From the NCBI RefSeq assembly GCF_963506605.1, contig NC_083291.1, positions 21,142,001 through 21,206,000 of the forward strand: a DNA stretch of 64,000 nt, in the 5' to 3' direction. The stretch's first letter is position 1, and each line of letters begins with the position of its first letter. The notes under the pieces are model-generated. The model saw only the letters and a list, made by a program, of their open reading frames with translations, was not told where the DNA came from and did no database searches. Of this stretch, positions 7,501 to 43,000 are shown piece by piece. Origin of the DNA: Zootoca vivipara. Lineage: Eukaryota. The translations under genes were made by a program, and so were the position numbers.

Positions 7501-10500
7501 TTCTTCACTGAATGATGCAATGCTATGCAACTGCAAAACAAGGAGCCTAATTAAAAGAGCATTGTATCAAGGATAGCCAATTTCTATATTCTCTGGTGGC
7601 CAATCTGGTTTCCAGACTGTGGGCCTGAAGAATACTTTGCACACAACCTAACTCCTTCATGGCTACTATAATAAAGTCTCCAAGTGACTACAGGCTTGAT
7701 TACTATGTACAGAGATGCAGCACTTCAAGTACAAGATAAATATTTCTCAGAACTTTAAGCATTTTTTCCCCTTTTGAAACTGTAGCATGCTTAATAAAAT
7801 ATTACAAATTATATCACGTCAAATGCTAGAAACGCAATATCAATACTGCAGATTTTATATCATCTCTAGAAGAAATATATTCCAAATGAAATGAGAACAG
7901 ATTCTGGAAGTTTTTGGCTTTACGTTAGGGATTAATTTTACTCTAGATGTTAGGGCTCATAATTGATTTTGAATGTATTGATTGCAGCGACGATTGTTTT
8001 AGCTATACACCAAAAAATTCCAGTTATTCCCCTAATTGTTGTTGTTGTTTAGTCATTTAATAGTGTCCGACTCTTCGTGACCCCATGAACCAGAGCATGC
8101 CAGGCACTCCTGTCTTTATTCCCCAAATTAGAGAATGGTTAATCAAAACTTTAAAAATAGAAGACATAAATTATTGGATGTTGCATGAAGAAGACAATCT
8201 CTCACTTTGGTTTCTTGTCCTTGGGAATGCCATTCCTTTCACCTCTCACACATTTTATGTAAATATATCACCCACCAGGCCCAGAAAGTATTGTTGCCAA
8301 GAGAAAACAAGGTAGATAGTCTTAGAGCTTACCTTTGGTTGCCTGCCAGGTATCCCAGTAGCCCTCCAGCACCTAACCCAGTCCAGAATCCAGGCCCAGA
8401 ATTTGAATTTGAACCAGAATACGAGCCACTAGCATCACCTTAATCCAAATAAAATTATATAGATTTAGATTAAACAATCTTTGAAACAGAAGCAGTGCTG
8501 CTATGTTTAAGAAAAGTTACAAGAGGGCTATTTGCTTTGGAATGTCACTCAAGATCAAGGAATCCTCTCAAATTATTTCAGACGTTGAATCAAGGGCTGC
8601 TTAAAAACTCTGAAATAATGAAGGGGAACTACACTAACAGTTCACACATGCACACTCATAATTCCCATTACGTAATGCTTCCAGATTCACAATGGGTAAT
8701 ATGAAGGCAATTCATCCGATGTTAATTCATACATGCAAATCATCATGATGCTATAGTTAACAAGGTAAAGGTAAGGTAAAGGGACCCCTGACCATTAGGT
8801 CCAGTCGTGACCGACTCTGGGGTTGCGCACTCATCTCGCATTATTGGCCGAGGGAGCCGGCGTACAGCTTCCAGGTCATGTGGCCAGCATGACAAAGCCG
8901 CTTCTGGCAAACCAGAGCAGCACATGGAAACGCCGTTTACCTTCCCGCTGTAGAAGTTCCTATTTATCTACTTGCATTTTGACATGCTTTCGAACTGCTA
9001 GGTTGGCAGGAGCTGGGACCAAGCAACGGGGGCTCACCCCATCACAGGGATTCGAACCGCCGACCTTCTGATCGGCAAGCCCTAGGCTCAGTGGTTTAAC
9101 CACAGCGCCACCTGGGCCCCAAATAGTGCCCCCAAATAAAAAAATAAAAATAAATAAAAAATAGCATCACTGCTATGTCAGCAAACACTATTGTCCAGCT
9201 TCGGACAAGATCTCTCAATGCCTGTGTTCCTGTTGTCATATACAAGAGAGAACGTTACCTGTGAAGTGGGATTTATATGCTGGAGGAGGTGAGAAGTCTG
9301 ATTTAAATCCTGGTGGAGGGGGACTTCGATGATCCTGCCCATTGGTTCCTGGATAGCCATCATCGTGAGAGAAACCATGTTGTGGCCGGTTATCACAGAG
9401 GAATAGCTTGTAGACGCCGTAAACAAGGACCACAAATAATATTAAGAGGACCACTCCAACACCTGAGCCTAATGAATCATGAGACGTTGTGGAATAGTAA
9501 CTCCCACCAAAGGAATTTGCTTTCTGCTGTCCTTCCTTGGTTAATTCTAATGTGTACTCCAAGCCACATGATCCTTTTAATATGTAAGGGTCATCCGGGT
9601 AATCGTATCCTTCACAGCTTACTTCGATTTTTCCAAAGCGATATGAAATATCCATATGTGCTTTACACTCCCACTGAAAAAGGAAACATCATTTGTTATT
9701 TTTGCTTCCTTTTAAGTAGAATAATATAAACTACAGATACCAAATTGTGTCTGTCCACAAGTGGACTAGATATCTATGAGCAAAATGGATTCCCCCTCCC
9801 TGCCCCTTAAATGTAAGCTAGATGACTTTATGGAGCAGATCTGACTGAGCATACAGGGAGAGAAGGAGAAGTCCTATCATATGAAAGGACTTCTGCTCAC
9901 ATGACCGTGGATCTCACAAATAATGTTACTTAAAAACAGTGTAACACGCACAGCATTTCTGTTTCCTGCAGATTGGGGGCAGGTTCTCAAAAGGAATTTC
10001 ACAAGAACATAACACTAAATAATTAATAAATTTGGACCTTGTAGTAAGACTTTAAACATTCATTCTCTGAGTTCTGTAGCAGTCAACACCAACTGTTTGA
10101 TTGCATATATATGGTACTTTATTTTTATTCTCAAGGGCTTTTTAAATTTATTAGGATGCATGTATCCTCAAAATATTAAAACAGCATGTCATTATTATTA
10201 TTTTAAATGGTTAAAGTTTTAAACAAAAGTTGGCAGAGAGGCTGTCAAAACTTTTGTTCAGAGTGAAATAGCATACATTTCATACATTCTGTGCCAGCTT
10301 CTTCTCTGCCTGAGATTTAAAAAGTAAGCCAGAAATGAATATGTCTTTTAGAAGTCACATCCCTTTGGTAAGGAACTACAGTGGTACCTCGACATCCGAA
10401 TGCCTTGACTTCCGAAGGTTTCGACTTACGAAGTTGGCAAACCCGGAAGTCTTTTTGCCATGCGTGTGGTCCACGCATGCGCAGAAGTGCAAAATCTCGC

Positions 10501-13500
10501 TTTGCGCATGCACAAAATGGACGCTTCGACATCCAAAGGTTTTGACTTACGAAGGGCGCCATGGAACGGATTGTCTTCGTAAGTCGAGGTACCGCTGTAA
10601 AGCACTTCTCTATTTTCTAATGACTTGGCACAATGCATTATCAAATTACAAAAAAAGAAAACCAAAACAGTACTTGACTTTATTATATGCCGTAAATACT
10701 GTATTTTTGGCCTAAAGAGTTCAATCTTCCAGGATTATAAATTAGTTATTTTAAAGAATGCAATGCAATAAAAAATTATCCTTATGGAGTTTACTCATCT
10801 AACATTCAAACCAGAATCGTCAGTCTACTTGTTGTAGAAGACTTCAAAATATTCCACTAATTCATTCTTGTGGCTGAGGAAGCAGGTTGGTCAACAATCT
10901 TGTTTGGAGAACTTTTATTACAGTTCAGTTTTTCTAAAAAAACAGAGTCCCATAAATGAGGGAAGCTTGTCTTTACCCACTTAACAGGATTCACAAAGTG
11001 GCTCGGGGAAGACTGTCAAACAGAAGTACGTACTCTTTAATAGCACAGGAACACTTGAAAGAAATATGGACCCACTTTGTAGAGGAGTTAGCTTCTCTCA
11101 ATCTAGCTGTTTGTTTTTTACCTCCTACGGTACATCTGGCTGGAAATGGAAGCATCAATGGTTCATCACCTTAAGTCCTGCCCATTTTGCCTTATGTATG
11201 CCTTATCAAGGGAACATACAGCATTTTCTCACCCCAACACCAGGATTAATTTATACAGATTCCCAAGTAACTATACCTGTACATCGTAGCCATCCCAGCC
11301 TTTGTTGTAACACTGGACAACCTCAGGGGTGTACGCTGCACATCCAGCTGAGCCGCCAGTACAGTGCAACTGGGGAACTGGAGATGTCCGTCGAGAATTT
11401 GTAAACCTGCCTGGGTAGAGTGTCAGGGCTTGGATTTCTCGCAACAAAATTTTATCTGGAAGAATGTGTGAGTTACAAAAATACATTGAGAAACACTAGG
11501 CAAAAATAGGAATGCAGACTTTTCCTTTTTTAAAAAAAAAATCCAGGGTAAACACTAAAAGCCAACAGTTAACTTCTCAGTAGAATAATTCCTGTTACCA
11601 TTTTCCCAGTATTTCCCAGCTGCCTATGACAATCCCAAATACTGATTTAACAAATAATATTACAAAGCTCTCTACTGTCTGAAAACTAAGCACAGAAAAA
11701 AGGATTTTCTTTTCTTATGCTCTACATATATGCTGATACATAATTACTGGAGGACAGGAAAGCACTGCCTTGCTGGATCAGGCCAATACCCCATTTCACC
11801 TTTTCTCAAACTTGGTTCCCCAGATGTTGGACTACCAACACCCATCATCCTGGCCCACTCGTCCTGGTAACTAGGAGTGATGGGAGTTGTAGTCCAACAA
11901 CATCTGGGGAACAAAGTTTGAGAAAGGCTGTTCCATATTGTCAAGTATTTTGTTTCCAAGATCTGTCAGCCAGGTGTCTTTGAAATCTCAGTAAGCAAGG
12001 TACTGTATGTACAGTGGTACCTCGGTTTATGAGCACAATTGGTTCCGGAAGTCTGTTCATAAACTGAAGCGTTCATAAACTGAAGCAAACTTTCCCATTG
12101 AAAGTAATGGAAAGTGGATTAATCCGTTCCAGATGGGTCCGCGGAGTACTCAACCTGAAGCGTACTTAACCCGAAGCATGGGTGTAATTGGTTCTGGAAG
12201 TCTGTCCATAAACTGAAGCGTTCATAAACTGAAGTGAACTTTCCCATTGAAAGTAATGGAAAGTGAATTAATCCGTTCCAGATGGGTCCGCGGCGGTCGT
12301 AAACCGAAAATTCATAAACTGAGGTGTTCATAAACCGAGGTTCCACTGTATCTTATTTTATACTAGTGTCATTCAGCCCATTAAATAAATGGGCGCTAGA
12401 ACGGGCCCCTCCCACAGCCGCCGCTTCGTCGTTGCGCTCTGCTGAGCCCAGCTGGCGCCCAGGAGAAGGCCGCGATTCGGCCTCTTTCTGCGGTGGCGGC
12501 GCCCACGGCTGCTGCTTCGTTGGGGCGCTCCACTTGCTGCTGGTCGCAGGGGGGGAGCGTAGGGGGGGAGGAAAAGCAAGCAGCCTCCTCCTCGCGCAGT
12601 GAGGCGCTTGTCCAGCCGGGAGCAACGGTTGGCGGCCACAGGTAAACGGTAGGCAGAGGGGTGGGGTGAGGAGTGTGTGTGTGTGTGTCCAGTCTCTGCG
12701 TCCAATCCGTGTCCGTGGGGCACATGCGCAGTAGCGTGGACACAGGGACTGGACGCAGACACACTTGCACATTATTATATAGGATTTGCCCAGCATAATA
12801 ATAATAATCAAATATACTGTATATAGTGTTTGGACATGGAGGTTCCATTTAATTTACAATCCTATCTACAACCGAACTGCAGCACATTGGATCTGAATTC
12901 CACATTCCATGAAATACACAGCATTGGGCTGTTACACTGAAGCCCAATTAGCCCACTACCTATTCATAAGATGCCTTTGAAAGCTACAGCTTTCCCCTGG
13001 TCTGACTAGTGATTACGGTAGTATGCAGAGAGATACTGCTGCTGAATAGGAAGGTTTTCATGTTGTCACCACCGTTACTGAGAATATGAAAAGACACTTG
13101 TTGCATCACACCAAATATTCACTTAGTGACCAGATTATTCTGGAACTCTTACAAAAAGGCAACTGCTCTCCTGTTTATTTCTCTCCCCCACCTACACCCC
13201 CAAAACCCCAGTCATATCCAGAGACAAACTGCCTCGGAGCCTGCATCTTTCATTTGTTAATTCATTAATTCATCCTATATAATAATGTCCAAGTTGTCCC
13301 TGCGTCCAAGCTGTCCCGTGTGTCCCTGGGTCACTGCGCATGTGCCCCAGGGATACAGGGATTGGACGGAGGGACAACGGCCAACCGCCGCTCCGCCAAC
13401 CGCCACTCCGAAGCCCAGTCTCATGCTGGAGGTGCGCGGCGAGGCGGCGGGGGAAAGAAGTGCTCCCCCCCCTCCGGCAGCCTTGCCGCGCACCTCCGGC

Positions 13501-15604
13501 AAGGGACAGCGCTTCCTCGGCCGAAGCGGCAGCGGGCGCCGGGGGAAGCCGGCTTTGGCTTGGCGGCGGCGGGAAGAAGAGAAGGAATTCCTCCTCTTTT
13601 TCCTGCCGCCGCCAAGCCAGTCCCCAAGCTGAAGTGCGGCGCGGCGGGGGCTTTTCGCTGTTTGACTTCCCGGAGTGAAGGGGGAGGCAAACGGCGAAAA
13701 GCACCCGCCGCGCCGCACTTCGGCTCGGGGACTGACTTGGCAGCGGCGGGAAGAAGGGGAGGAATTCCTCCCCTTCTTCCCGCCGCCGCCAAGCCAGTCC
13801 CGGCCCGCCGCGCCGCACTTCGGCTCGGGGACTGGCTTGGCAGCGGCGGGAAGAAGGGGAGGAATTCCTCCCCTTCTTCCCACCGCCGCCAAGCCAGTCC
13901 CGGAGCCGAAGTATGGCGTGGCGGGGTTTTTCGCTGTTTGCCTCCCCCTGGGGGGAAGGCAAACGGTGAGAAGCCCCCGCTGCGGGGTTGCCGGCTCTGT
14001 CGGGTGGGGGGGAGGGAGAAGCAGAAGATCTGATCGGTCTTCGGCTTCTCCCTTCCCCTGCCCAACAGAGCCGGCATTTGGCTCTGTCAGGTGGAGGAAG
14101 GGAGAAGCAGAGGATCGGATTGCTTCTCCCTCCCCCCACCCGACAGAGGCGGCAACCCCGGGATCTGTGCTTTCTGTCGGTGGTGGTGGGAGGGGAACGA
14201 ATGGAGAGAAAGGGCTGCTTTCTCTCCGTTCGTTCCTCTCCCCTCACCACCAACAGAAAGGGCTGTCGGTGGCGGAGGGAGAGGAAGGAAGGAGGAGAAA
14301 GGGCTGCTTTCTCCTCCTTTGTTCCTGTCCCTCTGCCGCCGACAGCAAGGACAGGTCCGTGGCGAGGCGGCGGGTGTGTGTGTGTGAGAAGCACTCCTCC
14401 CCCCCGCCGCCTTGGCACGCAGCGCCGGCATGGGACGGAGTTTCGGAGAAGATCTCCGGCCCCCCCCCTCGCCGCGCACCTCCCGCATGAGACGGGGCTT
14501 TGGAGACCTCCGAAGCTCCGTCCCATGCCGGCGCTGCACGAGAGCAGCGTTCTAGCGCCCGTTTCTAAACGGGCTGAATTCCACTAGTAGAATCATAATA
14601 CTGTTGAGTTGGAAGGGGCTCTGTGGTCCATTCACTACTACTACTACTACTACTACTACTAAATTTGTATACTGCCCCATACCTGCAGGACTCAGATGTT
14701 TCACAAGATAAAATTGCAATATAAAAACATAAAATACATAATAAAAATAAAAAAGTGAACCACCCAATAACCCCCTACTCCAACACATTTTAAAAGGGCA
14801 TTGGTCCCAGCCCTTTGCAATTCAATGAATTTGTCAACAAAAGCAACACAGCTCAGGCTTACAACCACACCCACCACCAGTCACAGGAGGAAAAAGGGGA
14901 TGTGGAGGCAAGTGGGAAACGACCAAGTTCAGGCATCAAGTTCTCTAAAAGCTTACAAATGCCCGCTTGGGCGGAAAGTAGTATAATACATGCAACACGT
15001 GGGCGACACACAATGATCTCCAAATCAATTCTACATTATTCATCATACAATGTTTATCAAACTTCTTAGATATATATATTTATGTAAAAGCCACAGAGAC
15101 TTACAAGCTAACAACTCTGAAAACAAACTGTTGATATCTAATTCCAATGCACTTTTCAAATTTTAAACTCCAACTGAATGTCCAATTCTAGTGTGTTTTC
15201 CAAATATTAAACTCAGTCTTTTGGGGGCTGTCACCCTTTGGACGCCCCGACATGCCACCTTTTGGCGTGGCCGGTCCCGCTTCTGCCTGCAACGAACGCC
15301 AAAACCCGGAAGCTCCCAAGCAAGCAGGACGCCGGGAGAGCCGCCCTCCCGCACCGAAGGCGTTTCCGAGGTAAACTGCTCCTGAGCCTGGAAGCCCCAT
15401 TTCCCTGTCAAGACTGACAACAGAAGCCTCTGACAGGATGTCAGGAAGCGGTGTCAAGGAAGCGGCAACACTCCTTTCCACTTCCCCACACGCCCGCCGC
15501 TCCGGCCTGGCCTTACCCTGCTGGGCCCAGCCCCACGCCAGCCCGGTCCCCGTCAGCACCACCAACAGCGGCAAGACCAGCGGCAGCCTCAGCGGCGCCA
15601 CCAT
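787..15604 (-). CDS. SARAF: Store-operated calcium entry-associated regulatory factor (TMEM66), complete, 6 coding exons, 312 aa
   Basis: Exons (minus): 15517-15604, 11277-11455, 9259-9673, 8333-8438, 4016-4140, 787-812; all GT-AG and phase-consistent, 939 nt in total. Signal peptide MVAPLRLPLVLPLLVV; luminal LLREIQALTL..PQLHCTGGSAGC..VVQCYNKGWDGYDVQWECK..VSCEGYDYPDDPYILKGSCGLEY; TM helix; PPPPGFK; GPGFWTGLGAGGLLGY; C-terminus SGFGGTKRR*. Confidence 0.96.
1538..3672 (-). mobile_element. 5'-truncated L2-clade LINE with uninterrupted ORF2 remnant (RT domain) in SARAF intron 5
   Basis: Open frame 1685-~3672 with NYRPVSNLPFLGK, LLDLSAAFDT, GVPQGSVLSP, QYADDTQLY and L2-type LHWLPV. 3' UTR ends in an (ATT)n tail at 1538-1568. 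TSD GAAAATAGAA at 1528-1537 and 3696-3705. Confidence 0.93.
5607..5908 (+). mobile_element. Sauria SINE (lacertid POM/Squam1 type), 3'-truncated
   Basis: tRNA-like head with B box GTTCGAATCC; body CTAGCAGTTCGAAAGCACGTCAAAGTGCAAGTAGAT shared with five other copies in the window. Confidence 0.85.
5997..6590 (-). mobile_element. Possible solo LTR
   Basis: TG..CA ends, near-matching flanks TCCTT/CCCTT, reverse-strand AATAAA (~6082) and TATA-like (~6160); contains an (ACAT)n microsatellite. Confidence 0.3.
8037..8113 (-). mobile_element. RTE/BovB-type 3' end fragment
   Basis: (CAA)n tail on the minus strand next to GTCACGAAGAGTCGGACAC, the BovB-like 3' terminus. Confidence 0.6.
8763..9120 (-). 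mobile_element. Sauria SINE, full length
   Basis: Reverse complement of the POM-type consensus with A/B boxes and an ACCTTT tail. Confidence 0.9.
10379..10597. mobile_element. Tigger/pogo-like MITE
   Basis: TIRs CAGTGGTACCTCGAC / GTCGAGGTACCGCTG, TA TSD. Confidence 0.8.
12012..12348. mobile_element. Tigger/pogo-like MITE with internal tandem repeats
   Basis: TIRs CAGTGGTACCTCGGTTTATGA / TCATAAACCGAGGTTCCACTG, TA TSD; same family as 45031-45447. Confidence 0.85.
12363..12784 (-). mobile_element. Non-autonomous Helitron-like element
   Basis: Minus strand starts TCCTATATAATAATG, ends in hairpin GCCCATT..AATGGGC then CTAG; inserted between A and T with no TSD. Confidence 0.75.
13273..14587 (+). 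mobile_element. Non-autonomous Helitron-like element with GC-rich palindromic internal repeats
   Basis: 5' TCCTATATAATAATG, 3' hairpin GCCCGTTT-CT-AAACGGGC then CTAG, A|T insertion site; termini shared with 12363-12784. Confidence 0.8.
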
Positions 15605-18495: not shown

Positions 18496-21400
18496 ATGGC
18501 CGGCATCAAAGGTAGCGCCGCTGTGGCGGTTCCGAGGGGTGGCATGGAAAGGGCCTGGGAGAAAGCTAAAGGCGGGCGGGCGGGGGGGGGTCTTCCGTGC
18601 CCTGTAAAGGAGGACGTCGCCCATCTGCCCTGGCGGTGACGTCTTCTGTCGGGGGGGGAGGGACCGCGTTGTTTCCATGGCAACGTGCGCCTTCCCCGCC
18701 TGTGAGGATGCGCCGCTTGGCTAGAAAAGCGCGCAAACGGAACGAGTGTCTCGATGTCTCTTTCTCTCCTCCCCTCAATACCTGGACCCACATTTCAAGG
18801 CCTGTGTGGGTTTGACGCTCCCCACCCCTCACGTCCGGTTCCGACATCCCTAGGCATGGGCCGGGTCACAAGGCGATCCCAGTGTTGTTGCCGGAAGCAA
18901 GGCCCGCCTCATAGGAGTTTTAACTTTTCGAGTTACCGGTAGCGGGTGTAGGAGATGCTGCTGCAGAGCCTGTGCAGAGATAGTATTCCCCCCACTTTCC
19001 CTAGCGCCAGGTACTGGGACAGAACAGGGAGGGGATGACAACTTAATGTTACTGTTAATTATTAAATCTGGATACTGCCCTTCTCATGCGTAGATATCAG
19101 TACGGTTCACAACATAAAAATGCAATATTAAAAACACATAATAATAATAATAATAATAGCCCTTCTTGTAAGCTCTCCAAAGGTATTCCGATTGTCATGC
19201 AAAATGAAATCTTGGGCTCTGCAAGCCTTTGGGCTGCAACCTGATGCACACTCGTGGCAATGGGCATGGCTAAACTTTGTCAGCCAAGCTTTGCGGTACC
19301 TTAAAATGCAAGAAACATTGTGATCCTGTGGCCTTTCTAGGCAGACGCAATGCCCCGCTGAGTGCAGTGGGGCTGCCAAATACTGTAAGTGTGTGTAAGA
19401 TTGCAGCTACACATTTATTGTGGCATAAACTATGAACCTGATCTCTTCCACAAAAGATCCTGCCACAATGAATTTGTTAGTCTGAGCTGTGAAAGGACTT
19501 TTTGATGGTTTTATTGCATTAGACCAGGCATCCCCAAACTTTGGCCCTCCAGATGTTTTGGACTACAATTCCCATCTTCCCCGACTACTGGTCCTGTTAG
19601 GTAGGGATCATGGGAGTTGTAGGCCAAAACATCTGGAGGGCCGCAGTTTGGGGATGCCTGCATTAGACTATGCAGCTTCTTCTGGAATTCAGCACCATTT
19701 AGCTTGGAAAAATTTGCTGATTAAGAAACACACATAGGTTTACCAATGTTTCTCAGACTTGGATCCCTAGCTGTGGTTAGGGGTGATAGCTAGGGAAGAT
19801 AGGAGTTGCATACAACAACAGCTGGGGACCCACATTTGAGAAGGACTGAATCCATTCCAGTAAGTACACTTGATCGTGCAACCTATTGAGTCTACAGTAA
19901 AAGTTATCAGATGCAAAGGAGGAAGATGAGGCTCCGTGCATTTAAATAACTGTTTATTTCACACATTTCTTATTTGTCTCTCATCTTGAAGTGGTTCGCA
20001 ATGTTAATCTTACACCTTTAAATAGCAATATACATACATACTTGGAGGGAGGCTGGGCTAAGTTTTGTAAATAGGCGAGCATGAATAAAAGAAAGTGGAG
20101 TGGCTTTATGAGAACTCACTGATTCAATCACTGATACTGGGGCAGACAACAGGGAAGTGCTGATACCTTAATACACAAACTTATATAAATTAACACAAAA
20201 GTAAGCCTTTTTGAGTTCAAGAATGAGACTTCATCTTATGTAAGTATATAGGATTTTGCTTTTGCTTTTGCCATGAACTTGCTCGGTATACCTAGGTAAG
20301 CTACTTTGTCTCCGCGTCAGTCCCAGTCTGAAATATGGAAAAATTAATATTCATCTACCTTACAGAGATCTTGTAGGAATGATGGGTGTAATTTTTGCGA
20401 AGTGCTATGAACAGTCAGAAAAGGCCATATAAGACTTTTGCAGTCTTAACAGTTCAGTCAATATCATTTAGTAATTTATTTACTGATGTTCTTCCTTTCC
20501 ATAAAATCAGCAGCAACCCAGCATAAAATTGGGTTCTCACCAGCAGTACTTAAATTCAACAGAACAGTCATGAGATCCCCAATTATCAGCATCAAATTTA
20601 GAAAGTGCAAATACAACTGTTTTTCATCTCACATAATGCATTACTTGTATTATTTTCATAAATAACATTCTACCAGGAGCTGTCAAAGCAGCTCACAGCT
20701 TATATAGATATAATTTTTGGAAAGGGGGCCATTTGCACTATTTAGTAATGCCCCTCTCTTATTTTCCCCCAAGCTGGATTTGCATCTTTGCTGTTGTATG
20801 GTATATTCAAAGTGACTGAATGAGAAGGCTGTAGATGAGAGGAATAGAAGCGGTACTCTGGTCTCCCTTCTGCCTGCAGTTCTTGTTGGTAGAGGGGGGA
20901 AACTGATCAAGTATTTTGGAGGACTGATACAGTTTTATGTCTGTCTTTACAGCTTTGATTAGCCTGTCCTTTGGGGGAGCTGTTGGACTAATGTTCCTGA
21001 TGCTTGGTTGTGCCCTTCCGCAGTACAAGTAATGCATTTTCAAAAGCATATTCTTGTTTGCTGTTGTCTTAGTTTCCTTTTAATTTCTAACTCTCTTTTC
21101 TTACTTCGTAGCTATTGGGTTTAAATAAGCAAACAAAACCAACACCAATCCTGGCAAATCACTAGCACCCCTTTGTTGATACACTCCAGTGATACACTCC
21201 AGTGAGAAAATGAAGCAAGCTATGGTCTTATGTTAAATCAGACAATTAGTCTGTTAAGGCAGTAACATCACATTAGCTGCAAACTCTTTAGCGTTTCAGA
21301 GTGTCTACCAGACCTGTCTGGCGATGCCAGAGATTGAAACCAGGGACTTCTGCCACTGCCCTTCCCAACGTCTGCCAACTGAGCACAGACCCTTCCTAGC

Positions 21401-24400
21401 TATGTGATGAAATTCAAATTGTAATTTGCAGCTACAAAGGTGCTCTGTTCATTATAATCCATACTGGATAGTTCAGGGGCAGCCAATTTGACCCCCAGGC
21501 GCTGCTGGACTATCGCTATCCCATCATTTCTGCCTTTTTGCCATACTGGCTGGAGTTTATGGGAGTTGGAGTCCAACAATATCTGAGGAGCACCACATTG
21601 ACTTATCTCGGAATCGTGTATAGACTTGGAGATAGAAAGCCTCTCAGGTTGTAATCCAAAAAGTTTATTCTTCTGAAGAGTCCTAAAGCAATAAACAGAG
21701 TGGCCTTCACAGCTTCAATCTGCTCTACAATATAGCTTTGGGTAAAGCCTGAACTATAAATTGAAACAAATTGTATGATTTTCTATCCCACTCTCTTCAG
21801 TGCATCAGTTTTGTTACTACAGTTGAATAGTTGCTTATATGCTTAATAAATTTGTTCTTCTTAAGGTGGACATACCAATGTTAAGAGATTATGGGCCATT
21901 CCATTGTCACGGGTGGGACACTTGGACCATGTTTTTTGGTATTCACACATGTGTAAGAATGTAAATATACATAAAAATTAACAACCAAAATTTGAACTAT
22001 GTTCTTAATAAGATACTGAACATTTTACTAATTTTTTATTATTTTTATGGATATTTTTGACAATTTTATTAAATGTTAAAGTATTGTCACGGGTGGGACA
22101 AAAAAAGGACACGGAGCTTGAGATAAGTTTGATTTATGGAAAAACTCTGTGAGTTGGGAGGTGAATCAATTATAAACTCAGCATATCTGTTTAAATCAAT
22201 GTTTATTGGTTACAACTATGCAATCAGAAATTTAGGTTAAGAAATTTAATGATACAAAATTAAGGAAAAAATGCTGTCACGGGTGGGACAATGAAATGTC
22301 ACGGGTGGGACGCGTCTGGCATACACTTGATTTAACATACAATTAAGGTTGTTAAAAATGGAATAATTACAAAAAAACCTTTTGCTATTACTATACTTAC
22401 TATCTACTATAGCCTACAAAGTATAATGTTGTATTTACTAAAATTAAAATCTATTTAAAAAATATTTTCTTCTAGTCCATCTCTGGGCCAATTAACCACT
22501 TTCAAACACATCTACATTTTCAGTAAATTCATAAAAAATGTTCCTTCTGACTCGTTTAACATTAGGTTGGGGTAAGATACTAAGAATATGTTCAAACTGC
22601 ACATATGATATGTCTTTTTCATCAACTTGAAACAGCTTTCCAGAATTGTTAACTGCTCGCATACACATCACCTTGACTTCTCCATCATCTTCAACATTAC
22701 TTTGGCATATTGCAGCATATCTATATTTAGTAGGCCTGGTTCTTTGTCTTTTTGTAGTTGTTTCAAATTCAACTAAAACATATGTCCCAATAGTCACTCC
22801 ATCAACGAACGGCTTCACTCCAACCACCGGCACATCTGTTTCATTTGTACAACTTGCTACACCATCTTGTTTTTCTGTGTCACTATCAGAATCTCTGTAA
22901 ACATCAGAAACTTTTAACTTGAACAGTTCTGTGAAGACTACGTGGGTGGACTTTTGAAAAGAAGGTCCATAAACTAAACTTCTTTTGTCTTTAGCTTTAA
23001 AAAAATGGTTGGACTGCACGTTTGGAATCTTCCTCACCAAAGTCCAGCGCTCATCTAGCATCGCCATATTTGCACTGATATCAGTAGGTGTTAAAAGGAC
23101 AAACTTCACTCTCGGTACTGCTTTTTCAGCACATTTAACAAAATCTGATGCTGAATTGATTACTACTCTCCTTTGTTTCACTGCATTCCAAACTGCTTGC
23201 TTAGTTAATCCACCAATCCCATCCACGGCACCCTTGCCGTGGGATGTAGCAAAAAAAAACCATTCCCCATCAACACCAAAGTCTTCAGGCATAAAACACA
23301 GATTGGACAGTGTGTACTTATTTTTGAACTGACCAGCACACCCATCAGAAAAGATTTTGACCTTTGTCAGTCTGTTAAATTCTTTCTTAAGTTCTTCAAT
23401 TATGGCTTTTAGGCATGCATATACTGAGTATTTGTCGTGGGTTAAGTGATCCGAAACCACGGCAAAAGAACGTACTTTGCCTTGAGTCCAAGCGCAACCA
23501 GTAAATACTGTGATTTGGTTGTGGGTCCAGTGTGCACTTTGGATTTCATCTTGCGATGTTGCCAAATAGTTTTCAGCAAAATCCACTTGAAGAATCACCT
23601 CATCATCAGCTACTGTGTCCTTCATATTTTTGAAAGCTTTAGCTTGTAATCGCTTTACAAAGAAGTGCTTCTTAAATTTACTAAATTGATTTTGTAGCTC
23701 ATTGACAGCTTCTTCTATGGTTCCTTTTGCTTCAAAAACCTTAGGCCGGCTAGAACAGTCATCTTTCCATTGCTTCCAGAAAATCTCAGACGACATGTTT
23801 AAGTCTTCATCAATTAGGGTGTGCAAATTAAGTACACACTTTTTGCATTCACCATTCATGCACTTTTCATTTTCCAAATCACAACAAGTAAGGCTCAAAA
23901 GATCAGAATGTGTGGAAGGAAAAAAAATGTCTTTCCTACTTATGGCTTCAATTAGGAAATTGAAATTAGCGTGGTATTTGCAAACGCAAACATTGTGTGG
24001 CATTTGAGAAGCTAAGTCAATATTTTTAGGCCTCAGTTCATAAAATTTTGATTTGCTGATTTCAACTGTTGGGTTATCAATCTTAAATAAGGCATAGGCC
24101 TCTTGGACTGTCATATTCATATGCCGCTTTTGGATTTTGATTCTTTTTCCACTTGTTGGATCTTTAATAGATTTGACATCCTTAATTCCTGGTGCCTGCC
24201 TGCTAATATCATCTGAATTATAAAACTCATGGACCTTTGCGATATTATCTTGTGAAATAATAGAACTTTTGGTGTTCTGTTTAGGGCTTTTATCAAATAG
24301 TGTTTTTGACGCTTGAGGTGAACTCTCATACACAAGCTTTCGTAACACGGCTATTCTTTTCCGTGGACTTAATGGCAACACTCTTTTAACTTTGGTAACA

Positions 24401-26708
24401 GCCTTTCCAAGAGATTGTGGGCATTTAAATGACCCAATCTCTGGAATAGTAGTGTCGCCAATTGGCCTAGATTCTTTTTCTTTTATCTTTTGTCTGTACT
24501 TTCTTTTGCGCTCAGTTTCTTTCCGTCTGTATTCCATAAGTGATTTTGCAGACAAATTCTTTACCAACTTCATCTTTTCTCGCCTCTTCTTATCTCTGAC
24601 CCTCTCCTTTTCTTTGAAGCTTTCACATTTGTTTTTATCTTGTTTTAGTTTTTCACGCAGCTTTCTCATACGTTCTGCAGATGTAGTCTTTCCCATTTTG
24701 TGTATTGATTCAAAGGTTATATTATCTGTATTACTGTATGTATTCGCATTAGGGTAAAGTAACGGTAACTGCCTTTATGTTCCAGAAGGAACAGCTACTA
24801 TTGGTTCATTCAAGCAGCTGCATTTGGCTCCTTAGTCTTATTGGTTTCCACCAAAAGGCAGCTTTGTGATTGCTTGAGATTGTTCCCTCCAAAATGTATC
24901 TCTTTCTAGCTAGTTCCCCTCTCCTCAGTCCCTCAGTCTTGTTTGCCAGAATAAAGAATTATTACATGAGGAATCTGTCTCCTGTCTGCAGAGAGCTGAA
25001 ATCACTTGCTGAAATCACTAACTCAAGCTACAACAGTTAGCAACCTAATAAAATAAGCTGAAAACTGTCACGGGTGGGACAGAAAAAAATTATTAAAATT
25101 TCATGGTGTTTACATTAATTAACTGCATTTTTATTATTGATAGGTGTGTTATACTCTAATACATACTCCCACAATAAAACAAACATAACCTATAAATTAG
25201 TTTTATCACAAAATAAACTTTTGTACCTTTTGCTGTCACGGGTGGGACACTGAAACAGCATCCCATTCAATAATAAAAATAAAATAGAAATAACTTACCT
25301 ATTTAAAAATTTTCAAGTCCAATGTGTAGACAAAGTTATTCACTTTAATAATATACCAACAATGACAACCACAATTTTTGTTTATCTTTAAAAAATAATG
25401 CCAACCTAAATGAACAGAATTAAGCTACACAATCAGAAAAGTGATACTGAAACTTCAAGCTCAAATTTCTCATGAAAAAAATAATTTCAAATTCTTTTTT
25501 CCTTTGGAATATTGAACTTTAATATGTTTAGTTAATGAAACTATAAGTAAAATAAGTATATTTTAAAAATAATTTTTTTCTTATCAGGCTCATTTTTCAC
25601 GGAATGGCCCTTATTTCAAAAACTCATATTAGGTCTGAGCATCAAACTCACATGGGCTGATGTTAATCGGTAGTGCCTAAGCTTTCTTACCGTGTACCTC
25701 AGCTGGTCCTAAAAAAATGGTCCCTCCTATTCCAAAGGGCACCAAGCCTTGGTTTAGATGTTTTGTTGGGCTTGTATTTTCCCCAGCTGTCTTTGCACAT
25801 GACTTTTATTTGCTTTATCGTAAATTATTACATTACTTATATATGGGTGTGGCTGTTTTATTGTGTTTTGCTGTGTATTGTAAAGGCAGACTTTATCTAA
25901 AGATACTCTGAGGACAAGAAGAAGAATACCTGTAAAATGCTATTTGCTTTCTTTTCTTCTAGCGAATATTGGCCTCTCTTTGTCCTGTTCTTCTACACCC
26001 TTTCTCCAATTCCATACTGCATAGCAAGAAGAGTCGTCGAAGACACAGATGCTACAAGTAATGCCTGCAAGGAACTTGCCATATTTCTTACGACGGGCAT
26101 TGTTGTCTCAGCATTTGGGCTCCCAATTGTGTTTGCCAGAGCACTACTGGTTAGTAATTCCTCCTTTTGAGCATGTGTTTCACTGTGGTGTTCTGTTTGT
26201 TTAAAAAGTGAGAAGCATAGAACAGGGAAAACGATGATGGGTAGTTTATAAAGCTTGTAGGCAGGACTGTAGATTATTTGACAGAGCATCTGGCAGATAT
26301 ATAGCCCAGATTATGGTATCAGGCACATAAAACAGTTGAAACAAATAGGATCTATTTGGGAGGCCACCTGGGAACCCTCTGAGCTCCTAGGAACAATGGG
26401 TTCCACATATAAGCAAATATTATAAAAGTATGAAGTGGCTTGCATCCAGTGTAATCACTCTGAACAGAAAGAGCTTCCTCCATTCACAGAGCAATTACGT
26501 TGGTTGCAACTCAATAGGTAGCATAATGTGTACGTGTTTGTTTGCTTCTTTGTATATGCCATGTAACTCTCCTTTCCCCCCTCGACCATAGATTCGTTGG
26601 GGAGCCTGTGCGCTTGTTCTCACAGGAAACACAGTCATCTTTGCTACCATCCTAGGGTTTTTCTTGGTATTTGGCAGCAATGACGACTTCAGCTGGCAAC
26701 AGTGGTGA
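18496..26708 (+). CDS. LEPROTL1: Leptin receptor overlapping transcript-like 1 (endospanin-2, Vps55 family), complete, 4 exons, 131 aa
   Basis: Exons 18496-18511, 20953-21028, 25963-26149, 26592-26708 (16+76+187+117=396 nt), GT-AG. Translation [94 protein letters not shown]. Adjacent to SARAF as in human. Confidence 0.96.
19525..19660. mobile_element. hAT-type palindromic MITE (GGACTACAA-TCCCA family)
   Basis: TIR CAGGCATCCCCAAACT / AGTTTGGGGATGCCTG; 8-bp TSD CATTAGAC. Related degenerate copies at ~11800-11930, 16165-16290, 19745-19850, 21470-21600, 30750-30850, 59818-59952. Confidence 0.88.
21893..25610 (-). mobile_element. Complete Sola2-type DNA transposon (3718 bp) in LEPROTL1 intron 2
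   Basis: 10-bp TIR GGGCCATTCC / GGAATGGCCC (fits GRG..CYC termini), 4-bp TSD TTAT (21889-21892, 25611-25614), six 16-bp subterminal repeats, one long transposase ORF. Confidence 0.88.
22492..24696 (-). CDS. Sola2-type DDD transposase, 734 aa, intact
   Basis: Intronless ORF. Basic N-terminus, CVCKYH..CC..C..C..C cysteine cluster, catalytic motifs QVDFAENY (D372), [11 protein letters not shown] (D451), [13 protein letters not shown] (D492). Confidence 0.88.
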   Translation of the reverse strand: MGKTTSAERMRKLREKLKQDKNKCESFKEKERVRDKKRREKMKLVKNLSAKSLMEYRRKETERKRKYRQKIKEKESRPIGDTTIPEIGSFKCPQSLGKAVTKVKRVLPLSPRKRIAVLRKLVYESSPQASKTLFDKSPKQNTKSSIISQDNIAKVHEFYNSDDISRQAPGIKDVKSIKDPTSGKRIKIQKRHMNMTVQEAYALFKIDNPTVEISKSKFYELRPKNIDLASQMPHNVCVCKYHANFNFLIEAISRKDIFFPSTHSDLLSLTCCDLENEKCMNGECKKCVLNLHTLIDEDLNMSSEIFWKQWKDDCSSRPKVFEAKGTIEEAVNELQNQFSKFKKHFFVKRLQAKAFKNMKDTVADDEVILQVDFAENYLATSQDEIQSAHWTHNQITVFTGCAWTQGKVRSFAVVSDHLTHDKYSVYACLKAIIEELKKEFNRLTKVKIFSDGCAGQFKNKYTLSNLCFMPEDFGVDGEWFFFATSHGKGAVDGIGGLTKQAVWNAVKQRRVVINSASDFVKCAEKAVPRVKFVLLTPTDISANMAMLDERWTLVRKIPNVQSNHFFKAKDKRSLVYGPSFQKSTHVVFTELFKLKVSDVYRDSDSDTEKQDGVASCTNETDVPVVGVKPFVDGVTIGTYVLVEFETTTKRQRTRPTKYRYAAICQSNVEDDGEVKVMCMRAVNNSGKLFQVDEKDISYVQFEHILSILPQPNVKRVRRNIFYEFTENVDVFESG

Positions 26709-37022: not shown

Positions 37023-40000
37023 ATGAGAAGGTACAGCAGTTGGAAACACCGGATGGCCTCATCTGTGGTAGCTTTAAGACCATGGAGTGCCCCATCCAAG
37101 GAAGCTTGCTTGAACACAGGGTTGTGTATATTTAGATGGGCAGTTAGAAAAACAAACTTGCATTTTCCTACAATCTTCCTTAGATACAGTTTTTAAAATT
37201 CCGATTGCCTTTTTATATTGATTGTTATACTGGTTGAGTGTTACTTTTGCGTTTTTCATGTGGTTATTGTTTGTTGCCTTAAATGTGTATGCATAATTGT
37301 GAGGGACAGGGGATATCGCGAAGTCCCTCCCCTCCTGAGTTCAAGCCAATCACCGAGCACAGGGGAAAGCAGAGAGAGTTCCGATTCCAGTAGGGAAGCA
37401 GGAAGTCGGGTCCGAGGCTCAGGCAAGGTAGAGGAGCCAGGGTCCCAGGCGGGACAGGAAGGGGCGAATAAGGGAGGGAGACCCATCCCCCCAACGCCAG
37501 AACTACGCAGAAAGAGGAGGGGAAAGAGGATGGGTCTGCCAAAGCTTTTGTGTTGGAGAAAGACGCGCCAAAAGCCATTAGGAGGTTCTGAAACCGACTG
37601 ATCACATCACTCCGTGTAAATAGCATGACTTCAGCACTGTAAATACGCAGCACCAATAAAAGAATAAAATGCAGAGCTGCGTAGCGTCGTTACTCTGAAG
37701 TAGTCCCCTCCGGCCACTGTGACAGCAACCTCCTAATCCTTTTTGGGCTACTTTGGAGTTGCCGGGATGAGCGTGTCAGAGGCGGAGAAATGGCGGCAGA
37801 TCGCGGAGCAAGCCCAGCAAGAACTGCAGCAGCTGTCGCTGCAGGCGCAGGGGGAATTGAAGGCAGCTAAAGAAGAGACTAGGAAGGTCCAGGACGACCG
37901 GCTACAACTGGCGGAACAGGTGAGAGCGCTACAGGAAAGAGAGCAGGAATTAAGGGCGGTGGCGGTAGACCTCCAAAACAAGCTGGATGCAGAGAAAAAC
38001 AAGGCGGGAGGGGCACCCCAAGTCCAAGTGCTGCCAGGAAGGAGAGCCGGGACGCTAGTAAGCAAGTTCAATGGAGACCCGAGGGAATATCAGGGCTTTG
38101 AGACTGAGATTGTGTATGCTCTTGAGCTGCACCACGCTGAGTTCCCTGATGATGAGCACAGGGTAGCGTTTATTGTGGAGCACCTTACCGGGGCAGCCAG
38201 GGAGTGGCTAAGACCGTTAATCGCAACAAAGAATCCTTGCATGAAGAATGTCAAACTATTTCTAGAAGGTTTGAAAACGATCTATTCGTCCGATAGTCAT
38301 ATGGACCAGACTAAGGAGGAACTTCATAATTTACGCCAAGGAAATATGACAGTTCGCGCGTATTGGGCGAAATTCACCATGCTGGTGCACAGATTGGGGT
38401 GGGAACTCGAGTCACCCCCAATGCAAGCGGCGTTCTACTTGGGGTTGCATGAGGAGGTGAAGGATGAGCTCTCGAGAGGTCCAAAGCCCAGTAATATGGA
38501 TCAGCTGAGCAAAGCGGCTCTGGCGGTGGGGGTGAGACAGGAATCCCGGTGGAGCGACAAGCAAGCAACGCGCGCAAAGCGGGCTTGGTTCCCACGGTCG
38601 CAGGAAAAGCCACTCCCCCAACAACCCTTTCAAGCCACGCCTGGGGCCAGTCAGGACCAGGAACCCATGCAGATTGATAGCGCGCGCGCGCGCGGGCTTT
38701 TCAAACCCCAGCGGCGCCAAGACGCAAGGAGGGAAGGGGTGGGAATTGCTTTCTCTGCAACTCCCCCCAGCATCTCGTCAGAGACTGCCCACATCGCAGG
38801 GAGTGGCAAGGAAAGGCGGGAACGGTTGTGCCCTCCCCCACTGACGCAGCACCACAGCAGGGAAACGGGAAAGCCTGGCTGCAGGAGACAAGGGGCAGCA
38901 GCCAGGCACAGTCAGCAGACAACAGCCCCAGCCCACCCACCCGCACAGAGAGGAGCAGAGCCAGCCCACCCCTCCCAGAGCAGGAGTGGTTCTAGAAGTG
39001 ACGCTCACGCTCCCAAATGGCTATCCCCTGACGGTCCTCGCCCTAATTGACAGTGGTGCCTCAGCCAACTTCTTCTCGAGAAACTTTGCAGAAGAGCACC
39101 AGATCCAGCTTCTGCAGCTGGATTTTCCCCTGCACGTGGCAACCATTGACGGCAGAGAGCTGCTGGGAGGGGCCATCACTCATCAAACCCCCCCCCCATG
39201 AGAATGACGGTGGGAAGGCACTCAGAGACACTGGCATTCAACGTCACAACCATCTCAGACCCCCCCATCGTCTTGGGCATGAGCTGGCTGGCGCGCCACG
39301 ACCCCTCCATCAGTTGGCACCAGAGATGCATCACTTTTGGATCGGACTTTTGCCTGGAACATTGCATGCAGCACCAACCAGGGGAGGGGCCTCCGATAGC
39401 CACGGTGGCCACCATGCACATCAAAGGGGGTGAGGCGATACCCAAGCCGTACTGGGACCTGCAGGAGGTCTTCAGCGAAGCGGAGTCCGACCACCTACCC
39501 CCACACAGGCCTTTTGACTGCCAGATCAACCTGGTGCCAGGGGCAACTATACCCCCAGCCAAGCTGTACGCCATGTCAGACCAGGAACTGGAGGATCTGC
39601 GCGCTTTCATCGACAAGAACCTCAAGCGGGGGTTCATCAGAGAAAGCAAGGCAGCAGGGGGCAGCCCAGTCTTCTGGGTGGACAAGAAAGACACGCAACA
39701 GCGCCGTCTTGTGGTGGATTTTAGACGGCTGAATTCAGTAACAGAGCCAGTGGCTTTCCCCATGCCCAGAGTGGATGATCTCCTGACAGCGGCACGCAGG
39801 GGCAAGATTTTCACCAAGCTAGACCTGAGGGGGGCGTACAACTTGATCAGGATCCGGGAAGGCGATGAATGGAAAACCACGATGTTCACGCCTCTGGGCT
39901 CTTTTGAATATCTGGTGATGCCCTTCGGGTTGCAAGGGGGCTCAGCATGCTTCCAGGCCTTCATGCACCACGTCCTGGGGTCCCTCCTCTTCAGGAAATG

Positions 40001-43000
40001 CTTGGTCTTCCTGGATGACATCCTTATCTACTCCGATGACCCAGTGCAGCATGTGAAGGATGTCAGGGAGGTGTTGCAGCGCCTGAAGGAGAACCACCTG
40101 TATGTGAAGCTGGAGAAGTGCAAGTTTCACACCAAGGAGGTGGACTTCCTAGGCTACAAGCTGTCAGACAAGGGGCTGGCGATGGACAAGGACAAGGTGC
40201 AGGCCATCCTGGACTGGCACAGCCCCAGGACGCGCAAAGATGCCCAACGCCTACTAGGCTTCGCCAACTTCTACAGGAAGTTCATCAAGAACTTCTCTCG
40301 CGTTACGGCTCCCATCACTGACTGCCTGAGAGGCAAGCAGAAGTTCAGGTGGACACCAGAGGCGCAAGCAGCGTTTGAAAGCCTCAAGAGGGTGTTCGCC
40401 TCAGACCAGAACCTGTTCCACGTGGTTCAGGACGCGCCCCTACGCGTGGAGACAGATGCTTCTGATAAAGCTGTGGGCGCCATTTTGTTGCAACTGGACG
40501 CCAACAGAGAGTGGAGACCCTGTGCCTTCTTCTCCAGGAAGTTGACCCAGCCAGAGCGAAACTACACGGTGTTTGATCGGGAACTTCTTGCGATCCACGC
40601 TGCGTTCCAGCACTGGAGACACTTCCTGGTGGGCGCCAAGCACCCCATCCAGGTGTGCACAGACCACAAGAACCTGGAGTTCTGGAGAACTGCCAGGGTG
40701 CTCAACCAGCGGCAGATACGGTGGGCAGAGTTCTTCTCGAACTTCAACTTCTCCATACACTACATCCCGGGAGAGCAGAATGTCAGGGCGGATGCCCTCT
40801 CCCGCAAGCCAGAGTACATGGAGGAGGAGGCGCCACCGGCACCCAGGCACATCTTCCCCCCGTCAGCTTGGTCCTGCGGAGCAGCAGTGGTAAGCGAGGC
40901 AGAACTCACAGCACTGACAGCAGCGGATGAATTTGCCAACCGCATCTTCAGAGAACTGAGAGGGGGGGGGAGCAGGCAAACGACTTTGCAGAACGCAGGG
41001 GACTGCTTTTCTACAAGGGTGCACTGTACCTGCCCACCACCCAGCTCAGACGTACGGTCCTCAAGCAGATGCACGACAACCCAACGGCGGGTCATTTTGG
41101 GAGGGATAAAACCACTCACCTAGTCATGAGACACTTCTGGTGGCCAGGGGTGCGGGAGGATGTGAGGGATTATGTAAGGGGCTGTGACACCTGCCAGCGG
41201 GCAAAGGTGGTCAGAGCGCCACCAGCAGGTTTGCTGGAGCCCTTAGCCACACCGCACAGGCCGTGGGAAGTAGTGTCCATGGACTTCATCACAGACCTGC
41301 CGTCGTCCAGGGGCAAGACCGCAGTGTTGGTGGTGGTGGACCTCATGTCCAAAATGTGCCACTTTATACCGTGTGCCAGGGCGGTCTCTGCAGAAGAGAC
41401 AGCCAAACTGTTTGTGGATCACGTATTCAGACTGCATGGATTACCTTTAAGGGTTATTTCGGATCGTGGCCGCCAATTTGTTTCCAGGTTCTGGCGGCGG
41501 CTCATGAACCTCCTGCAGGTGGAGGTCAGCTTGTCGACGGCTAGACACCCGCAGACCAATGGACAGGCGGAGAGGGTCAACGCCATTCTGCAGCAGTACC
41601 TGAGATGCTACGTCAGCCAGCGGCAAACGGACTGGGTGGATCGCCTGCCACTGGCAGAATTTGCCTACAACAATGCGGTGCACGTCTCCACAGGGGTGTC
41701 GCCCTTTAAGGCCAATTACGGGCGCGACCTCAGATCTTTCCCAGAGAGGGAGGGGGAGGAGGAGGAGGAGGGCCCACAGGCTGAGGATTGGGCAGAGGAA
41801 CTGGAGACGGTGCACCAGCAGCTCAGAGAACACTTGGAGAGAGCCAAGGAAGCGTACAAGAAGGGGGCAGATCGCCACAGGCGACCGGGGGAGGTCATTA
41901 GGGTGGGGGACAAAGTGTGGTTGTCCTCGGAGGGCCTTCCCATCAGAGGGCGATGCAAAAAGCTGGCGCCCAGAAGGTTGGGCCCCTTCACGGTCACGCA
42001 ACAGGTCAACCCGGTGGCATACAGGCTGGCACTGCCAGAGGACATGAGGGTGCACCCTGTGTTTCATAGATCGCTGCTGTCGCCGTACAGGGAAAGCAGC
42101 AGGCTCCGAGACAGCGAACAAACCCCTGAGGGAGGGGGGGGAGAGGGAAGGCAGGGAGCAACTCAATGAGGCCACGGCCATCCTGGATTCAAGGTGGGGG
42201 GTGGGGGGACTGGAGTACCTCATGGCATGGGAGGATGCTCCACCGTCCCAGAATGAATGGGTCCCAGCCACTCAGATACAGGAGGAATTCCTGGTAGAAG
42301 AATTTCACGCCCTCTTTCCCCATAGACCCAAGCCCTGGCACATGGAAAGGGAGGGGGAGGGGGAGGAAGCACGGGAGAGCAGTTCACCATGGCGCTGGGA
42401 AGCGGAGTTTGAGGAACCAGAGGATGAGGTATGGGTGTCACCGAGATCCACCCAGTCAGAGGAAGGAGCAGATTGGCAGAACATTTTTACCCCCACCAGC
42501 TCTGACGCCACGGACTTTTTGGGATTCCCATCCTCCCAGGCGGAAGGGGGGGGCTTGCAGGACTGGGGGGAGGTGTTCACACCAACGGGCTCGGAAAGCA
42601 CTGAGTTCTTAGGCTTCCAGTCGTCACCGACACCTGGGGGGGACCTGGGGAGGGGTGAAGGAGAGCTTGGGAGGGGGGTGGATGTGAGGGACAGGGGATA
42701 TCGCGAAGTCCCTCCCCTCCTGAGTTCAAGCCAATCACCGAGCACAGGGGAAAGCAGAGAGAGTTCCGATTCCAGTAGGGAAGCAGGAAGTCGGGTCCGA
42801 GGCTCAGGCAAGGTAGAGGAGCCAGGGTCCCAGGCGGGACAGGAAGGGGCGAATAAGGGAGGGAGACCCATCCCCCCAACGCCAGAACTACGCAGAAAGA
42901 GGAGGGGAAAGAGGATGGGTCTGCCAAAGCTTTTGTGTTGGAGAAAGACGCGCCAAAAGCCATTAGGAGGTTCTGAAACCGACTGATCACATCACTCCGT

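Follow-up and report, generated by a model that had tools for sequence, protein, structure and literature searches.

An intact Sola2-like DNA transposon in a lizard genome and its probable recent exchange with arthropods

Introduction

The locus described here raises the question of how a DNA transposon of Sola2 type, a kind of element for which our literature search found records in protists, molluscs, insects, and crustaceans, came to stand complete in the genome of a lizard. The window analyzed is a 64-kb stretch of the Zootoca vivipara genome (contig NC_083291.1, positions 21,142,001 to 21,206,000 of the forward strand; positions below count from its first letter), in which an earlier note, made from the sequence alone, had marked an intact and autonomous element of this type and proposed that it had arrived recently, perhaps from an arthropod. 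The literature search returned no report of Sola2 in squamates, and Zhang et al. 2020 mentions neither Sola nor lizards. The account that we favor, and hold as a whole with good confidence, is that of an autonomous Sola2 transposon that inserted after the split between two lizard species, species A (presumably the source species) and the related species B, and whose family was probably exchanged with arthropods.

Structure and boundaries of the element

The element is delimited by terminal inverted repeats (TIRs) that are perfect over 10 bp, as the earlier note had described them, with GGGCCATTCC occupying 21893-21902 and GGAATGGCCC, its reverse complement, 25601-25610, and the match extends to 11 of 12 positions. 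Both copies of the TTAT target-site duplication (TSD) claimed for it lie directly outside these ends. Around the open reading frame (ORF), an inverted repeat of 10 bp combined with a duplication of 4 bp is expected 0.027 times by chance (2,000 shuffles of the flanks), and the sole other such pair in the real flanks is A/T low complexity. The boundaries are also backed independently, by a contig of species B that joins 21892 directly to 25618 and by contigs from another run that depart from the window sequence at 21890/21892. Between them the G+C content is 34.7%, versus 44.4% for the 64-kb window, elsewhere in which no further copy or fragment of the element was found.

In addition to the TIRs, we identified a 15-mer, TGTCACGGGTGGGAC, that occurs in six exact copies within the element, all on the plus strand, where 0.08 would be expected by chance. 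Four of the copies fall within 420 nt at the ORF-downstream end, the first of them abutting the TIR, and the remaining two lie upstream of the ORF. The 15-mers share one orientation at both ends rather than being mirrored, an uncommon arrangement for sites that a transposase binds.

The predicted transposase

The reading frame proposed earlier, 734 codons without interruption and with aspartates at positions 372, 451, and 492, is confirmed in the sequence, D372 standing in VDFAENY and D492 in SHGKGAVDG. Across 38 aligned full-length relatives the three aspartates are invariant, as are H486, G487, K488, G489, and seven cysteines and histidines upstream of the core; this Cys/His cluster is probably zinc-binding. 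A basic, helical N-terminus is likewise held in common with the relatives. A Pfam search of the 734-aa protein matched 0 families, which is consistent with the absence of a Pfam family for Sola transposases (PMC5751038), while the same search of its relatives gave one protein with a sub-threshold match to DUF7869.

The fold was approached through an AlphaFold2 model with a mean pLDDT (predicted local distance difference test) of 81.9, in which the core runs beta1-beta2-beta3-alpha-beta4-alpha-beta5-alpha, the canonical RNase H order. In this model D372 lies on the first strand (366-378) of a three-strand sheet (366-378, 394-404, and 407-415), D451 ends the fourth strand (445-451), and D492 falls within a helix (489-507) that follows the fifth. 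The matches that Foldseek returned were all weak, with E about 4e-4, and comprised integrase cores, the terminase nuclease of a herpesvirus, and Hermes. Structural re-alignment then matched whole retroviral integrase cores (VIA Z 11-12, rmsd, the root-mean-square deviation, 2.4-2.7 Å over 130-140 residues), with the IstA and Mos1 transposases ranking after the retroviral integrases. As modelled, the transposase core is an RNase H-like DDE/D fold with its three aspartates at the canonical positions. The likeness to retroviral integrase, IstA, and Mos1 lies in this fold and in the placing of three acidic residues; sequence identity to them is 8-17%, the third residue is here D and not E, and the N- and C-terminal domains differ. 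A C-terminal beta-rich domain (residues 639-723, window 22528-22782) fell, in several matches, opposite the SH3-like domain at the C-terminus of retroviral integrases, and is noted as a lead only.

Assignment to the Sola2 group

The Sola2 group was reportedly defined by Bao, Jurka and Kapitonov in 2009. A later study (PMC3627910) gives 4-bp AT-rich target-site duplications as the mark of Sola2, and its supplement prints the transposases of two dictyostelid elements, Sola2_DFa-2 and Sola2_PPa-1. The block around the first aspartate reads MDFKEN in both of these and VDFAENY here; that around the second reads SDGAKHFKS in DFa-2 and CDNARHFKS in PPa-1; and that around the third reads YHGKSDVD and YHGKSECD, respectively, versus SHGKGAVDG here. 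Taken with the lizard protein, the likeness can be written as DF(K/A)EN, SDG..(H/Q)FK(S/N), and HGK..VD, in the same order and at similar spacing, with the aspartates of DFa-2 separated by 87 and 43 residues and those of the lizard protein by 79 and 41 (manual count). Moreover, DFa-2 and the lizard protein have the block SD.L.H...YV in common, as well as a pair of Cys upstream.

The ends follow the same pattern. Sola2_DFa-2 ends GAGC...GCTC and is flanked by AAAT duplications (PMC3627910); the lizard element ends GGGC...GCCC and is flanked by TTAT, so that its termini are of the Sola2-type GRG...CYC form. Relatives at 28-43% protein identity on metagenome contigs carry similar termini, starting GGGC or GAGC. 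A strict search for perfect TIRs with a duplication had yielded little, most contigs being too short, and it was a looser search for terminal motifs that succeeded. One relative (L033) is a 3,694-bp element with ends GGGCATATCCAT / GGTTATATCCAT and an ATAT duplication; L017 and L018 have the terminus GGGCCTGTCCAT followed by GCTGTGGGACA; and L004 has GGGCGATTCCA at both ends.

The subterminal repeats can also be followed into these relatives. Three or four GTGGGAC motifs lie downstream of the ORF in each of L010, L011, L017, and L018, and their spacings in L017/L018 (23, 188, and 150) are close to those of the lizard 15-mers (22, 190, and 180). GTGGGAC is the core of the subterminal repeat, whose number and partly spacing are kept in relatives with 28-35% protein identity.

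Short TIRs of 10-13 bp, a 4-bp AT-rich duplication, and the absence of a Pfam family are further likenesses to the dictyostelid elements. These differ in being 10-15 kb long, multi-exon, and carriers of Fanzor1, whereas the lizard element is 3.7 kb with one intron-less ORF; their host is a protist, and the lizard element sits in an amniote, compared with the protist and invertebrate hosts of Sola2. Its TTAT duplication is AT-rich but lies outside the AWWT pattern of the DFa families. Compared by eye, the motifs and ends support a Sola2-group class II cut-and-paste transposon, and the type first suggested for the element is borne out by its GGGC...GCCC termini, the 4-bp AT-rich duplication, and three catalytic blocks at similar spacing.

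Integrity of the coding sequence

At columns conserved in at least 80% of the alignment, the lizard protein deviates in 5 of 122, the lowest count among the 38 relatives. The two closest proteins (P0001 and P0121, 95% identical) are frameshifted shortly before the third aspartate, at codons that in the window contain ten consecutive A (23246-23255), and the lizard copy is unshifted there. When the ORF was compared with copies in three other runs, 11 of the 17 differences listed were silent, compared with an expected silent fraction of 0.21-0.27 for the transposase ORF (P about 1e-4 to 1e-3), and so were five of the six listed differences private to the lizard copy; the list is partial, comprising the best-supported differences and not picked by coding effect. 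This excess of silent differences indicates that the lineages diverged under selection for a working transposase.

The lizard copy shows no coding decay after insertion. With the ORF open, the ends intact, the conserved residues kept, and few departures at conserved columns, the description of the element as intact and autonomous stands, and on these sequence features the copy could be competent for transposition.

An empty orthologous site and the family in species B

A search for the empty TTAT site in a relative had been proposed as a check on recent insertion, and that site was found in a DNA run of species B, in which the window flanks diverge at 54 of 1,373 positions (3.9%). A contig of 2,758 nt from this run follows the window from 21201 to 21892, reads TTTAA, and continues from 25618 to 26298. 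The site therefore reads ...GAGATTAT-TTTAA-AAAAACTC, where the predicted empty site is ...GAGATTAT-TTC-AAAAACTC. Since species B has a single TTAT and no footprint, its site is empty and was never occupied, and the insertion is accordingly younger than the split between A and B. In species A, sequencing runs that come from five studies contain 0.8-0.92 of the element's words. Excision in species B was considered and rejected: there is one TTAT and no second, and TTTAA for TTC is ordinary divergence in an A/T run.

The family itself is present elsewhere in species B. Its coding copies differ from the lizard element at 13 of 1,987 positions (0.65%) over the ORF, with a contig depth of 5-16 versus about 7 in the flank, or roughly single-copy, and over a piece of non-coding sequence the difference is 7 of 424 (1.65%). 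Three segments of the element reach very much higher depths in this run (Table 1), and internal-deletion joints occur at 22292>22908 (depth 2,232), 23029>25525 (depth 386), and 22486>24600 (depth 76). These depths point to thousands of short deletion derivatives in species B, resembling MITEs (miniature inverted-repeat transposable elements), with the proviso that read depth is not copy number.

Relatives among arthropods and evidence for transfer

A word search with the lizard protein retrieved 602 relatives, of which the best 120 were inspected for names. Past the 95% pair, the next relatives are 56% and 55% identical, and the named proteins among the best 120 are all from insects except for one sea cucumber, with no vertebrate. 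The insects belong to Hemiptera, Phasmatodea, Orthoptera, Lepidoptera, and Coleoptera, at an identity of 54% at most. They include proteins of Schistocerca serialis cubense (LOC126417315, P0029), Cacopsylla melanoneura (A0A8D9F251, P0008), Homalodisca vitripennis (LOC124358190, P0011), and Bacillus rossius (LOC134541539, P0017), which are full-length and have the same domain order and invariant residues as the lizard transposase. Because the named insect proteins are only 41-54% identical to it, none represents the donor lineage. In a protein atlas the nearest clusters are arthropod and mollusc.

In the protein tree, few rows of which carry organism names, the lizard protein and P0001 are sister to P0002 and the Schistocerca protein (support 99), followed outward by P0003, P0005, P0007, and P0010 (98) and then by the Cacopsylla pair (95). 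This phylogeny conflicts with that of the hosts, the lizard protein nesting first with an orthopteran and then with hemipteran sequences at a support of 95-99.

Copies far closer than any named protein come from RNA. Two metatranscriptomic runs of one study, labelled 'insect metagenome', hold 0.27 and 0.23 of the words of the element, and contigs of one of them (X19) span 21899-25407, at a depth of 3-10 in the insect-labelled runs. They differ from the lizard copy at 46 of 2,136 coding positions (2.2%) and 25 of 764 non-coding positions (3.3%), or about 97.5% identity over about 2.9 kb. If the insect-labelled sequences do come from insects, such identity, non-coding sequence included, is impossible to reconcile with vertical descent between insects and lizards. 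Copies at this level are known from RNA contigs alone. One X19 contig skips 600 nt in a gap that on the coding strand starts AG/GTAAGT and ends 2 nt before the ATG, which identifies it as a spliced 5' untranslated region (5'-UTR) intron, and an unspliced contig likewise occurs in X19.

Two metatranscriptomic runs from another study, of an organism that we call C, hold about 0.4 of the words. Their contigs cover 21892-25180 and differ from the lizard copy by 1.8% in coding and 3.7% in non-coding sequence, and two differing flanks at the left terminus indicate other insertion sites. Organism C shares the lizard-type stretch 24751-25035, and may therefore be a lizard or hold lizard material.

The region between the ORF-upstream 15-mers and the ATG (24699-25035) stands apart. 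It is richer in G+C, at 42%, its coding strand has two CCAAT-like boxes and ATAAAGG, it reaches very high depth in species B, and it is present in organism C, while the X19 contigs have no alignment to it at 85% identity or above. An upstream region specific to the lineage, or simply fast divergence, could account for this. Capture of a host promoter in the lizard lineage was considered and dropped, 30 letters of X19 being loosely similar and fast divergence perhaps sufficing.

On this evidence, a recent horizontal transfer involving an arthropod lineage is likely, with no direction implied. The arthropod link, which had been put forward from the lizard sequence alone, is now carried by the contigs at about 97.5% identity in two insect-labelled RNA runs, one of them spliced, and by protein neighbors that are dominated by insects. 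As for a viral vector, neither a protein relative nor an exact end sequence was found in a viral contig collection.

Points against this account and alternative explanations

Several observations weigh against the account given above. Purifying selection on an active lineage, and not arrival after the split, could explain part of the low coding divergence between A and B (0.65%, with the flanks at 3.9%), and the choice of Sola2 over Sola1 and Sola3 was made on motifs and ends, not by profile. The sequences from X15, X17, and X19 were compared as contigs and not as raw reads, so that their identities are those of an assembled consensus. The right end past 25407 was not recovered in the X19 contigs, and at the 3' end of the X19 intron the lizard copy has CA instead of AG. 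In a lizard RNA run (X21), of which about 6% was read, each bin over the ORF has 0-2 reads. Finally, insect samples that were blood-fed or cross-contaminated could have held lizard nucleic acid.

The last point leads to the strongest alternative, in which the lizard Sola2 is young as described and the insect-labelled sequences, perhaps with those of organism C, are lizard nucleic acid that derives from a blood meal, from prey or predator, or from laboratory or index cross-contamination. Transfer would then have to stand on the protein tree and on patchiness by themselves. That the evidence consists of metatranscriptomic contigs, and that organism C has the lizard-type upstream stretch, speak in favor of this explanation. 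We nevertheless judge it improbable, given that the ORF is near silent in lizard RNA whereas coverage in the insect-labelled runs is even and takes in almost all of the element, which traces of lizard RNA would hardly yield, that the X19 copy is 2-3% diverged from the copies of both lizard species, that X19 lacks an alignable 24699-25035 region and has a spliced form with a canonical donor, and that the element is found in two runs of the insect-labelled study.

An old squamate family, inherited vertically and continuously active, would call for no horizontal transfer at all; purifying selection on the ORF can hold coding divergence low, and the family is abundant in species B. This explanation is very unlikely in the face of the identity to insect-labelled sequences, which extends to non-coding positions, and of named protein relatives that include no vertebrate among the top matches and are nearest in insects, at 54% or less. 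Moreover, the non-coding divergence of the element between A and B (1.65%) is lower than that of the flanks, and its G+C content is 10 points under that of its surroundings.

A domesticated transposase gene at a fixed host locus might be suggested by the intact ORF and its mostly silent differences, yet it is ruled out by the empty site in species B, and the perfect TIRs and TSD, the copies at other loci with other flanks, the swarm of deletion derivatives, and the almost complete lack of expression leave it a negligible probability. An assembly artefact that joined insect contaminant DNA into the lizard scaffold, as the AT-rich, host-unlike composition and insect-like relatives might suggest, deserves practically no credence, since the TSD is host sequence, the boundaries match the empty site of species B, the element recurs in the runs of species A from five studies, and the family is at high copy number in species B.

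Proposed mechanism and history

The following steps are drawn from established knowledge on DDE/D transposases. The transposase would recognize the termini, GGGCCATTCC, together with the six repeats of TGTCACGGGTGGGAC, and its N-terminal half, which contains the Cys/His cluster, probably makes this contact. The protein would then pair the ends, excise the element, and integrate it by 4-bp staggered cuts at AT-rich targets, such that the 4-bp target, TTAT in this case, is duplicated on insertion. Deleted derivatives that retain the binding sites could be mobilized in trans. As to history, the lizard copy inserted after species A split from species B; the family has been active in these lizards, as its coding copies of about 99% identity elsewhere in species B and its derivatives show; and an arthropod lineage was most likely its partner in a horizontal exchange. 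We further entertain, as a tentative possibility, that an amniote Sola2 is naturally active here, in the form of the lizard copy or of a sister copy elsewhere in the genome, and belongs to a lineage that is now passing between insects and lizards.

Genomic neighborhood

The coordinates of the element and its parts are collected in Table 1. The neighboring long ORFs in the window are retroelement genes or match no Pfam family, and evidence either way on the intron location given in the earlier note was not found. At 1685-3772 (minus strand), a 695-aa ORF with an RVT_1 match (E 8e-38) belongs to a non-LTR (long terminal repeat) retrotransposon, named L2 in the first reading of the sequence, and at 37743-42986 (plus strand), a run of long ORFs in which RVT_1 and RT RNase H were matched marks an LTR retrotransposon whose pol is largely open. 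Many overlapping long ORFs of up to 418 aa lie on both strands of 12353-14587 without a Pfam family, a pattern typical of G+C-rich or low-complexity DNA.

In the left flank, 21540-21585 is a short interspersed repeat with a depth of about 3,700 in species B and many continuations in lizard RNA; it is probably a fragment of a short interspersed nuclear element (SINE), unrelated to the transposon. In the right flank, 25988-26158 has a few lizard RNA reads with the first mate mostly on the minus strand. These might represent the pre-mRNA of a plus-strand host gene, with the element then lying antisense in an intron, although the evidence is thin.

Table 1. Positions of the element, its parts, and related features (window coordinates, except for the last row)
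Feature	Position	Strand	Basis
Whole autonomous element, 3,718 bp	21893..25610	- (oriented by ORF)	TIRs and TSD; species B empty site 21892 to 25618
TSD TTAT, left copy	21889..21892	.	Sequence
TSD TTAT, right copy	25611..25614	.	Sequence
TIR, ORF-downstream end, GGGCCATTCCAT	21893..21904	+	10/10 perfect, 11/12 versus other end
TIR, ORF-upstream end, reverse complement GGGCCATTCCGT	25599..25610	-	Comparison of both ends
15-mer TGTCACGGGTGGGAC, subterminal copy 1, adjoining TIR	21905..21919	+	Exact repeat
15-mer TGTCACGGGTGGGAC, subterminal copy 2	22085..22099	+	Exact repeat
15-mer TGTCACGGGTGGGAC, subterminal copy 3	22275..22289	+	Exact repeat
15-mer TGTCACGGGTGGGAC, subterminal copy 4	22297..22311	+	Exact repeat
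15-mer TGTCACGGGTGGGAC, copy 5, ORF-upstream	25066..25080	+	Exact repeat
15-mer TGTCACGGGTGGGAC, copy 6, ORF-upstream	25234..25248	+	Exact repeat
Transposase ORF, 734 aa, single exon, ATG to TAA	22492..24696	-	Sole ORF; 602 relatives by word search
RNase H-like catalytic core (predicted), residues 360-530	23107..23619	-	AlphaFold2 model, structure matches, invariant D triad
Catalytic codons D372, D451, D492	23581-23583, 23344-23346, 23221-23223	-	Invariant in 38 relatives
Cys/His cluster, residues 233-287 (C237, C239, H242, C272, C279, C284, C287)	23836..24000	-	Invariant in 38 relatives
5'-UTR intron, 600 nt, removed in X19 contig	24699..25298	-	Joint 24698>25299, side 109
End segment, very high depth in species B	21893..22292	.	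Depth 10,000-12,000 versus about 7 in flank
Upstream segment, very high depth in species B	24620..25132	.	Depth 2,560-11,800
Right end segment, high depth in species B	25475..25610	.	Depth 4,390
GTGGGAC sites in relatives	L017:1428-1815, L018:4454-4841, L010:2588-5482, L033:6878-7751		

Significance

Transposon transfers between insects and tetrapods are known from SPIN and OC1. For reptiles, horizontal transfer of DNA transposons is documented by Harbinger-Snek in sea kraits (PMC8437027) and by hAT-6, which is found in turtles, fishes, and a frog (PMC11008031). The lizard case resembles all of these in being a patchy, young, high-identity family across distant animals that then gave a non-autonomous burst; compared with Harbinger-Snek and hAT-6, it belongs to another superfamily and retains an intact autonomous copy. 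Because the transfer of DNA transposons and the amplification of MITEs are already well known, the case extends this knowledge and does not change it.

For the Sola superfamily itself, we know of no solved structure and of no model of its biochemistry. Being compact, at 3.7 kb, with a single ORF that lacks introns, with perfect ends, and with defined subterminal repeats, the lizard element is a handy candidate for first assays of excision and integration, and if it is active, it would provide the first workable pair of transposase and ends for Sola, together with six candidate binding sites of 15 bp. More generally, one more superfamily thereby joins the few transposon exchanges between insects and vertebrates on record in reptiles, and the burst of short derivatives that usually follows is visible in the related species B.

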